DNA of 63,992 bases, counting the filler, from Olpidium bornovanus S191 (taxonomy: Eukaryota; Fungi; Olpidiomycota): assembly GCA_017911155.1 (NCBI GenBank). It is 30 parts of 30 records of this genome, joined end to end, with 100 filler letters (N's around TTAATTAATTAA, not from the genome) between each part and the next. Parts side by side here need not be neighbours in the genome. Positions count along the whole stretch, not along the records: positions 30,449 to 32,017 come from JAEFCI010008433.1; 29 more parts are not named here. One strand, given 5' to 3'. Of this stretch, positions 30,176 through 32,017 are shown one piece after another. The notes beneath the pieces are model-generated. The model ran no database searches, was not told where the DNA came from, and was given only the letters and a program-made list of their open reading frames with translations. Position numbers and translations under genes: made by a program. Within the stretch, counting starts at the first letter, position 1. The number at the start of each line of letters is the position of its first letter.

Positions 30176-30633
30176 TGAAAATCCGCTGGAAGCGTGGGGT
30201 GGGGGAAGGGGGAAGGGAAAGGGGGCCGGGGGTGGGAAGGCCGGAGCGGTGGTGGGCCACTACCGTCCGACCTGCTTGCAGTCTGTCCCTTTCTCGTCGT
30301 TTTCGACTCCCCGGAAGCTCGCTTTCGCTCGCAGCGGTCTTTTTTCCCNNNNNNNNNNNNNNNNNNNNNNNNNNNNNNNNNNNNNNNNNNNNTTAATTAA
30401 TTAANNNNNNNNNNNNNNNNNNNNNNNNNNNNNNNNNNNNNNNNNNNNCATGGACCGTTGTGGCGGTACGCGCGCTAATCTGCCGACGCCGCGCTGGCCA
30501 GCCAAATGGCAACTCGCAGTTTGCGGCAATAAACCCTGCTGCAGCCGACCACGTGCGCCAGTCACGTGACTTGCGGATGAGCCGCACGGCCCTGCTCCAC
30601 CGCCCGGCGCCGCCGCACCAGGAAAAGTGAGCG

Positions 30634-30664
<31 letters not shown>

Positions 30665-30798
30665 GACGGCTGGAGGGCGACGGAGGATCCCAGAGGGACC
30701 TTCCGCCCCGAGGCGTGTCCACCACGCGACCGCTTGCTGTACGACTCGGCGCCCGCACGTAAGCTGCGCACCGCCCTGGAATCCACGCCTCGAGCGCG

Positions 30799-32017
30799 AT
30801 GGCGGCGCTGCCGCTCTCCAAGGTGCGCGCGCATTCGGAAATCGCGCGGTGCTCGGCGGGGTGCCGGCCCACGGGTTGCGAGCTGACTCGAGGCTAACCC
30901 CCCCCCCCACCCACCTTCCTGCGCCTCGTGCACCAGGAGACGACCGTCCTGCTCGTCAAGAAGCTGCCCGACTTGGACCCTGCCGCGATGACCGATCTCT
31001 TTCGCCGCTTCGGGGCCAGCGACGTCAGGCCCATGTCTTCTAAGGGTCGTATGGTCTGTATCCTTTTTGGTCCGAGGGGGGCGGGGGAGCTCTCCCCATC
31101 GGCGCCCTCTGGGGTTCGCTATTCCAGCGTGACGTTTACCAAGACCTCCGGAAAACGCGGTTAACGAGTTTCAGGCAGGCACTATCGATGGCGCCCTTAA
31201 GTTGGATTTGACTCCCTTTCCCTTTCCGCACTGCCCGGTTTTGCGCCGTCGCCCGGCCGCTTCGCGCGCCCTGTCCAACGGTTTCCAAAACAAAAATATC
31301 TTCTCGTTCCAAAAAAAAACAAAACAAATACAAAAAGAGAAACAGCGCGTTCGTCAGCTTCCCGGACCGAGAAGCGGCCTCGTACGCGCTTTCCCGGCTG
31401 CTAGCGCTTGACTTCCGCGGCCGCAAGCTGCGAGTGGAGTTCGCCCGTCCGAACAACCACGCTCTCCGCGCCGCAAACACAACATCTTCCGCTGCGAAGA
31501 AGTGGGTGTTGCCTGGGACCATTCCGCCGAGTTTGATTCGGCTTCGAGAACTACAGCCTTGCTTATGTACATTTCGATGTACATGTCGACCTCAGTGCAA
31601 ACCCGCCGCCGCCACCGCAGCAGCAGCAGCAGCAGCGTCGCCACATACCAGCACGACAACCGTCGTTTCAAGTCGGGGACAAGCAGGCCGGTCACTCGAA
31701 TCCTAAGCAGACCACCACCACCACTTATCCTGCACAAGCAGCGGCCGGCGCGTCGCACCAACGCGCCAACCCTGTCCCTATCGCGCCGCGAGTAGGGTGG
31801 GTCCCGGCGTTTGTGCGCGGTATCTTGTTCTATGATCAGCCAGGCAATGCGGAGACCTGAGAGAAAGATCGACGTTCCCCGTTTTTTAGGATCGACTATC
31901 CGCCGCCACCTACCCTTTACTATGACTACCCGGCGCCTACGACTTCGATCCTGACAAACATCGGCCACGCGATAGCGGCTGTGCCGAAGCTGTATGTTCA
32001 GGTTTTACATCTCATGA
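30799..32017 (+). CDS. RNPC3: U11/U12 di-snRNP 65 kDa protein (minor spliceosome), 3'-partial
   Basis: Exons 30799-30822, 30937-31053, 31338-31501, 31596-31796, 31890 onward: VLLVKKLPDLD...DLFRRFGASDVRPMSSKGRM|RNSAFVSFPDREAASYALSRLLALDFRGRKLRVEFARP ... PIAPRVG|IDYP...YDYPAPTTSILTNIGHAIAAVPKLYVQVLHLM. Compare human RNPC3 KGRL|KHTAFATF and YPPPSSTILANIVNALASVPKFYVQVLHLM. Confidence 0.92.

Follow-up and report, generated by a model that had tools for sequence, protein, structure and literature searches.

A U12-type 5' splice-site consensus overlapping the intron 2 donor of a fungal RNPC3 gene and its possible role as a U11 sensor

Only one type of element is known to exert feedback on the minor spliceosome, namely the U11 small nuclear ribonucleoprotein (snRNP)-binding splicing enhancer (USSE), a tandem element reported in animals and plants that works by exon definition. 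In the genes for the 65K and 48K proteins, its tandem U12-type 5' splice sites (5'ss) are bound by U11 and left unspliced, and they activate an upstream U2-type 3' splice site (3'ss) by exon definition (PMC3584512, PMC5473595, PMC8329584); U11 binding is also reported to be required for nuclear retention of the human 65K isoform that carries a long 3' untranslated region (3'UTR) (PMC5473595). No fungal case is mentioned in either a review (PMC3584512) or a pan-eukaryotic survey (PMC10639083). Overlapping U1 and U11 sites, at which U11 antagonises U1, are found in Rous sarcoma virus (RSV), within its negative regulator of splicing (NRS) (PMC8329584). Here we describe a locus of the GC-rich fungus Olpidium bornovanus S191 at which a perfect U12-type 5'ss consensus lies across the U2-type donor of intron 2 in a gene assigned to RNPC3 (U11/U12-65K). 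Positions refer to the window, the whole 63,992-nucleotide stretch; the analysed piece comprises 30449-32017 (1,569 nt, 61.5% GC).

The 65K protein encoded by RNPC3 bridges U11 and U12 within the minor spliceosome. On the plus strand of the piece lies the 5' part of a spliced gene, its first five exons, that we assign to RNPC3; the 3' part, including the C-terminal RNA recognition motif (RRM) and the 3'UTR, falls beyond the piece. When translated with the junction 31053|31338, the five exons form an open frame of 211 residues, and the product contains both an N-terminal RRM (Pfam RRM_1, E=6e-7) and the RNPC3 motif YPPP..VPK[LF]Y[VT]QVLHLMNKMNLP. A stretch of 42 residues in exon 5, the 59K-binding-region motif IDYPPPP..VPKLYVQVLHLM, found 196 RNPC3-like matches in a phmmer search of 1.84 billion proteins (best E=3.6e-10) and is 74-76% identical to fungal orthologues. 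Among the 24 source-named matches that were checked, all names were RNPC3/65K, generic RRM or hypothetical, with no conflicting name; the specific ones read RNA-binding region-containing protein 3 or U11/U12 snRNP 65K. The RRM_1 match, the motif matches and the names of the homologues all agree with the original prediction, made from the DNA alone, that this gene is RNPC3. The closest full-length matches reach ~42% identity over the 211 residues; the top ones belong to early-diverging fungi (Basidiobolus, the chytrid Quaeritorhiza, Glomeromycotina, Polychytrium and Piromyces), followed by animals and one amoebozoan. No relative above ~42% identity exists in the protein collections.

The boundary between exon 2 and intron 2 reads ...AAG GGT CGT ATG|GTCTGTATCCTTTTTGG, and the features that surround it are as follows.

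30937-31053, plus strand: exon 2 in its productive form, encoding the first half of RRM1 and ending ...KGRM; ~42% identity to fungal RNPC3
31054-31059, plus strand: U2-type donor GTCTGT with C at +3; the sole donor that joins 31338 in frame, used by no RNA contig
31058-31068, plus strand: U12-type 5'ss consensus GTATCCTTT with two further T, a 9/9 match; putative U11 snRNP site
31054-31174, plus strand: retained segment of 121 nt, present in every RNA assembly in which the gene is well represented; in-frame TAA at 31162-31164
31159-31174, plus strand: GGTTAAC followed by AG 31173-74; TTAAC agrees with the U12 branch consensus TCCTTAAC at 5/8 positions, 7 nt lie between, and the spacing fits a U12- or U2-type 3' end
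31175-31337, plus strand: GC..AG sub-intron; ~40-60% of the assembled depth lacks it and the other part keeps it
31338-31501, plus strand: exon 3, encoding the second half of RRM1 and starting with the RNP1 octamer RNSAFVSF

The donor (31054-59) and GTATCCTTT proper (31058-31066) are offset by 4 nt and share two nucleotides (31058-31059), and the donor's +5G and +6T double as +1G and +2T in the U12 motif. As in the NRS, a U1-type site and a U11-type one overlap, and binding at the two would probably be mutually exclusive. The nonamer agrees with the 5'ss consensus of U12-type introns, RTATCCTTT, at 9/9 positions, as originally claimed, and, even when one mismatch is tolerated, has no second occurrence in the piece; the next-best matches reach 7/9 and lie elsewhere. 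At the composition of the piece, a perfect motif is expected by chance with a frequency of 1.4e-6 per site and 0.002 per piece. The background rate that the original prediction had proposed to count comes to 0.0004-0.001 for the 284 nt of intron 2 and to ~3e-5 within 10 nt of the donor, and RTATCCTT occurred anywhere in intron 2 in 0.37% of 200,000 Markov simulations. For one gene, the U12 motif at RNPC3 intron 2 is real and far beyond chance. When many genomes are scanned, a chance 9-mer in some RNPC3 becomes conceivable, and independent evidence therefore matters.

Joining 31053 to 31338 produces ...KGRM|RNSAFVSF... and a frame that stays open through all exons; at the same joint, homologues read FRM|RNMIF, KQM|KNTAF, QQL|KNSAF and GRM-KNVAF. 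Enumeration of all GT/GC/AT..AG/AC pairs found only 31054..31337 to give the RNP1 octamer together with a loop of homologue-like length, and this enumeration and the RNP1 of the homologues uphold GTCTGT at 31054 as the sole in-frame donor to 31338. The junction 31057|31338 translates into GRMV and then a stop, the immediate termination that had been foreseen for splicing from 31058 to the same acceptor. With either AG 31174 or AG 31337 the U12 site leads to a stop; its sole stop-free 3' partner is AC 31212, whose use would insert 43 residues into RRM1. By translation, the U12 site is predicted to yield productive mRNA with none of the 3' ends.

Other readings of the intron were tried and rejected. 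A U12-type GT-AC intron from 31058 to 31212 would stay in frame and has the branch-like CCCTTAAG at 31194-31201 (6/8 against TCCTTAAC, 12 nt before AC 31212), but it would bring the 43 extra residues into RRM1 and is absent from RNA contigs. A U12-type 3' end near 31337 lacks branch-like sequence within 10-20 nt. A micro-exon at 31179-31200, named in the original prediction as a structure that would speak against it, is in frame when combined with a U12 intron 31058-31178, but it adds eight residues unknown in homologues and finds no support in the RNA, where no contig breaks at 31178, 31200 or 31340. Masking of the donors by RNA structure was rejected as well, the fold of 31030-31200 being no more stable than its shuffles (z=+0.87), and an Rfam search of intron 2 returned chance-level matches only (E>1). 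The frame of exon 3 is open upstream to at least 31213 (31213-31337), probably as a by-product of A/C-rich composition; no RNA junction was found for a longer exon 3.

The gene is present in eight public RNA assemblies, which share an organism label and stem from two studies; four of them (X1-X4) were aligned to 30937-31308. Contig assemblies drop rare variants, so that absence of a junction from contigs is no proof of its absence. In X1-X4, a contig covers 30937-31174 without a break at exon-like depth (10, 48.8, 33.8 and 31.4, respectively) and is joined to exon 1 with intron 1 removed. A retained-intron contig runs from 31145 into intron 2 (depth 3, 14.8, 12.5 and 9.0), and a contig of 58 nt consists of 31145-31174 followed by 28 letters of 31338-31365 (depth 4, 10.6, 19.9 and 11.4). 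The latter contig, which had been predicted beforehand from k-mer overlaps, proves the junction 31174|31338 and, with it, an intron 31175-31337 that has GC..AG ends. All sampled words of 31054-31144 are present in 8/8 runs, and introns 1, 3 and 4 show zero retained depth in the RNA contigs. Intron 2 alone is badly processed in steady-state RNA, and, because all assemblies read through the in-frame TAA at 31162-64, the dominant RNAs are non-productive. An intron-retained transcript with a premature stop had been anticipated by the original prediction, and 121 nt with the TAA are indeed kept in every assembly, at intron 2 only; the prediction went astray on the splice pattern, in that the main splice starts from the GC donor at 31175, which it had not foreseen.

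The two junctions that had been proposed for comparison, 31053|31338 and 31057|31338, are both absent from the contigs of the four assemblies, and no contig breaks at 31053 or 31057, with the reservation that contigs can miss rare variants. By the rules that assemblers follow, a productive junction present as a minority would fall below about a quarter. Acceptor use of AG 31174 (31053|31175) was not seen in RNA contigs, whereas donor use of the following GC was; nor was an alternative upstream acceptor seen in them, the sole upstream 3'ss being the constitutive one at 30936, 121 nt away. At 31174/31175, the sequence tttcAG|GCAGGC places an acceptor-like beside a donor sequence, and the GC donor is used in the four RNA assemblies. 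Once 31175-31337 has been removed, AG 31174 abuts exon 3, and productive mRNA would still arise by a further, recursive-like splice from 31054. A difference at 31195 (C>T), seen in the retained-intron contig of X1 only (depth 3), is probably one of strain or allele. Two raw-read runs under the same species label (X14 and X20) gave 0 reads on a 1.5-kb stretch in ~1-1.5 Gb sampled from each; set against a depth of 10-50 in the eight assemblies, this may mean that the gene's organism is a minor component of the material (symbiont, parasite or contaminant).

For comparison, the exon-intron structures of 11 fungal RNPC3 loci (L001-L011; 69 introns) were rebuilt from annotated proteins. An intron occupies exactly the codon of intron 2, in phase 0 before the RNP1 octamer, in 11/11 orthologues; their donors are GTAAAT, GTGAGG, GTATGC, GTAAGC, GTAAGT, GTAAAA, GTAGGT, GTACGC, GTAAAA, GTATGA and GTAATA. 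A purine stands at +3 in every one of them and in the three other donors of the present gene (GTGCGC, GTGGGT and GTGGGT). The conservation of RTATCCTT at +5, which the original prediction had suggested looking for, did not materialize, a U12-like motif being present at the intron 2 position in 0/11 orthologues. Because the intron is U2-type and free of the motif in all of them, the arrangement described here appears to be a derived gain: intron 2 is best read as an old U2-type intron in which GTCTGT with a U12 consensus at +5 is the derived state. Two intron positions are common to the gene and all 11 orthologues, one preceding the RNP1 octamer in phase 0, the other preceding G-I-x-Y-P in phase 2. 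Among the annotated fungal models, several stop short at 207-276 aa and have no C-terminal RRM.

One chytrid does have a perfect copy, at another intron. In Quaeritorhiza haematococci, GTATCCTTTT stands at +20 (L002:2574) of the U2-type intron before G|IEYPPPP (L002:2555-2727); this intron, which bears GTATCCTTT at +20, is homologous to intron 4 of the present gene. It is the sole 9/9 match to RTATCCTTT in the 69 introns of the 11 loci, in which ~0.05 would be expected, and the intron has an in-frame TAG directly after its U2 donor (GG|GTAGTT). This arrangement points to an identical logic, but at another intron. A U12-branch-like TCCTCAAC lies ~65 nt beyond GTATCCTTTT. The ATATCCTAT that Basidiobolus carries at +11 in an intron of 54 nt was set aside as probably due to chance, with a match of only 8/9 in an AT-rich genome.

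A further 80 RNPC3 loci were taken from metagenome contigs. Three of these, L046, L048 and L049, represent one eukaryote with a nearly intron-less RNPC3, and ~300 nt past the stop they carry a USSE-like tandem pair, ATATCCTTTT-N17-GTATCCTTTT followed by CCTTAAC (L046:3168-3215, L048:2617-2664, L049:3293-3340); a possible 3'ss, ctgcag, lies ~170 nt upstream of the pair. By its layout, the pair provides a positive control for a USSE of the classical kind and a contrast to the single copy found here. In L069-71, ATATCCTTC was rejected as a U12 motif because it is coding sequence. No relatives of the read-through open reading frame (ORF) (30937-31161) were found in a search for conservation of VCILF.

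The best and simplest reading of these data is that a single-copy U11 site vies with the productive U2 donor and would thereby exert feedback on 65K. In such a scheme, productive mRNA would need U1/U2-type use of GTCTGT at 31054, either directly to AG 31337 or in two steps, with the GC sub-intron removed first and 31054 then joined to AG 31174, for which the TTAAC ~10 nt upstream could serve as branch site. U11, as part of the U11/U12 di-snRNP, would bind GTATCCTTTTT, its 5' end being expected to pair with AUCCUUUUU, and would keep U1 off GTCTGT. With U1 excluded, the next usable donor would be the GC at 31175, or else the whole intron would be kept; both outcomes would extend the exon by 121 nt with an in-frame TAA. 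If the U12 site were itself spliced to AG 31174 or 31337, a 4-nt frame shift and an immediate stop would follow. More U11/U12 would then mean less 65K mRNA, a negative feedback. That the stop-containing RNAs dominate suggests an escape from nonsense-mediated decay (NMD), possibly because bound U11 keeps them in the nucleus. The overlapping sites and the non-productive RNAs are observed; we infer the binding of U11, its competition with U1, the dependence on the level of the minor spliceosome and the fate of the RNAs. The observation behind the original prediction is thus confirmed and its regulatory interpretation partly supported, and we judge the chances of this competitive feedback to be evenly balanced.

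Several points weigh against U11-mediated competition. The motif is present once, whereas it is tandem in the characterised USSE, and the 3'UTR, the usual place of a classical USSE, lies outside the piece. The motif is missing from the same intron of the 11 orthologues, and the 80 metagenomic loci show no strand excess of RTATCCTT (16 on the gene strand versus 18). With the productive junction found in no RNA contig, and rare variants liable to be dropped, the switch has one documented state, and the library types of the RNA runs are not on record. A weak donor could by itself explain poor splicing: intron 2 would then merely have a weak GTCTGT, U1 would settle on the cryptic GC at 31175 or nowhere, and the U12-like 9-mer would be incidental. 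The C at +3, unlike the 14 other donors examined, fits this account, as do the lack of conservation and of strand enrichment just described, and chance 9-mers are expected somewhere when very many genomes are scanned. Against it stand the expectations of ~3e-5 within 10 nt of the donor and ~0.002 in the piece, the fact that RNPC3 is one of only two genes known to be regulated through such sites, and the second perfect copy near a U2 donor in the chytrid orthologue; moreover, the odd +3 and +4 positions are not demanded by the U12 motif, so that donor and motif look co-adapted. We consider a merely weak donor distinctly unlikely. An account that we rate simply as unlikely keeps the feedback and has it operate by splicing rather than occlusion, with 31058-31174 as a genuine GT-AG U12-type intron (GTATCCTTT...TTAAC, AG 31173-74) whose frame-shifted product (GTC T|AG or T|GC..TAA) is lost to NMD. 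The perfect 5'ss and the TTAAC ~10 nt before AG 31173-74, a U12-like spacing, speak for it; slow, retained splicing is typical of U12-type introns and matches the 121-nt retention, and prospero and SRSF10 provide examples of U2 and U12 sites, nested or competing, with one end in common (PMC8329584, PMC7244321). However, the branch GGTTAAC agrees with TCCTTAAC at only 5/8 positions, the 31057 junction is in no contig of the four assemblies (although NMD or contig simplification could hide one), and with the AG acceptors at 31174 and 31337 a stop results and no functional product.

Two further possibilities concern the history of the locus. The gene might be decaying, in a lineage that is losing minor splicing and whose RNPC3 copy, with a damaged intron 2, makes no productive mRNA. 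The productive junction is indeed seen in 0/4 assemblies, and the protein of the gene is absent from a collection of 15 billion proteins; yet the frame is open over five exons with 31053|31338, the RNP1 octamer and the 42-residue motif (74-76% identity) are well conserved, the other three introns are precisely spliced and the gene is expressed in 8 runs, all of which makes decay very improbable to us. Scarcely to be credited is the idea that the motif survives from an ancestral intron of U12 type now turning U2-type. The literature has suggested nested U2/U12 sites as intermediates of such conversions (PMC8329584), and the U12-branch-like CCCTTAAG before AC 31212 would suit such a past, but all 11 diverse fungal orthologues have a U2-type intron at the same codon and in the same phase, a U2-type ancestry that argues against a relic; furthermore, the 4-nt offset is frame-incompatible with any plausible 3' end that restores RNP1, and a perfect 9/9 match would not persist.

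The rest of the gene is regular and comprises the following features.

30799-30822, plus strand: coding part of exon 1, ATG..AAG, MAALPLSK; RNA contigs cover 30674-30820 and are spliced to exon 2
30823-30936, plus strand: intron 1, GT..AG, fully removed; joint 30820>30935 (cut +2) in X1 and X2, inner depth ~0
31502-31595, plus strand: intron 3, GT..AG, fully removed; joint 31501>31596
31596-31796, plus strand: exon 4, a low-complexity linker
31797-31889, plus strand: intron 4, GT..AG, fully removed; joint 31795>31889 (cut +1)
31890-32017, plus strand: start of exon 5 with the IDYPPPP..VPKLYVQVLHLM motif; the piece ends within the exon

According to the RNA contigs, the transcript starts at or before ~30674, inside or after a (GA)n tract; this tract spans 30629-30668 and coincides with, or is close to, the 5' end of the contigs. 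Upstream of the transcript, two CACGTG boxes stand 6 nt apart (~30553 and ~30565). A gene on the minus strand was considered and dismissed, the three long ORFs on that strand all being without a Pfam match.

Taken together, the two fungal cases allow a wider proposal, which we advance tentatively and hold to be somewhat less than an even prospect: that early-diverging fungi, or a related lineage, have a U11 sensor of their own, in which a single perfect U12-type 5'ss on or just inside an RNPC3 U2 donor blocks that donor and holds stop-containing RNAs in the nucleus. It would have arisen at different introns (intron 2 here, the intron before G|IEYPPPP in Quaeritorhiza) and, while convergent with the tandem USSE found in animals and plants, would differ from it in mechanism. 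If true, feedback on the minor spliceosome would have a deeper origin, or be easier to invent anew, than has been supposed; a single U11 site could suffice; and a cellular gene would rely on the direct competition of U1 with U11 that has hitherto been described for a retroviral element. That gene predictors overlook or fragment RNPC3 here would be accounted for as well. The element is compact, at ~300 nt, and should be of moderate to high interest to researchers of the minor spliceosome.

With the USSE, the locus shares the 65K gene, a non-coding U12-type 5'ss consensus that is apparently unused as a donor, non-productive isoforms and the logic of negative feedback. It differs in copy number, with one site here (no other match of at least 8/9 occurs in the piece) against a tandem pair; in place, a coding-region intron atop a productive U2 donor as opposed to a position downstream of an alternative 3'ss in a 3'UTR or intron; and in mode of action, presumed occlusion or competition at a 5'ss instead of activation of an upstream 3'ss, of which the RNA gave no sign. 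As both the tandem repeat and the upstream activation are missing, we do not class the element as a USSE. The RSV NRS resembles it in that a U11 site overlaps a U1-type site, the snRNPs compete, and unspliced or non-productive RNA results; that element, though, is viral, and in it U1 is inhibitory and U11 relieves, whereas in the gene described here, which is cellular and codes for a U11/U12 protein, U1 would be the productive partner and U11 the inhibitor. Competing or nested U2/U12 introns, such as the prospero twintron, SRSF10 and NCBP2 (PMC8329584, PMC7244321), likewise have close sites with a possibly shared 3' end, and the choice between them sets protein output and reports how active the minor spliceosome is. 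Both sites are spliced there, and the U12 route of SRSF10 is productive; here, neither junction is seen and the U12 route would be non-productive only. The juxtaposed acceptor and donor of tttcAG|GCAGGC, finally, recall recursive sites of zero-nucleotide exons and the stwintrons of fungi (bioRxiv 10.1101/006163; PMC6616335), but use is demonstrated for the donor half alone, the order would be the reverse of the classical one, the intron measures 284 nt rather than tens of kb, and the splice signal of the outer intron is uninterrupted, contrary to the definition of a stwintron.

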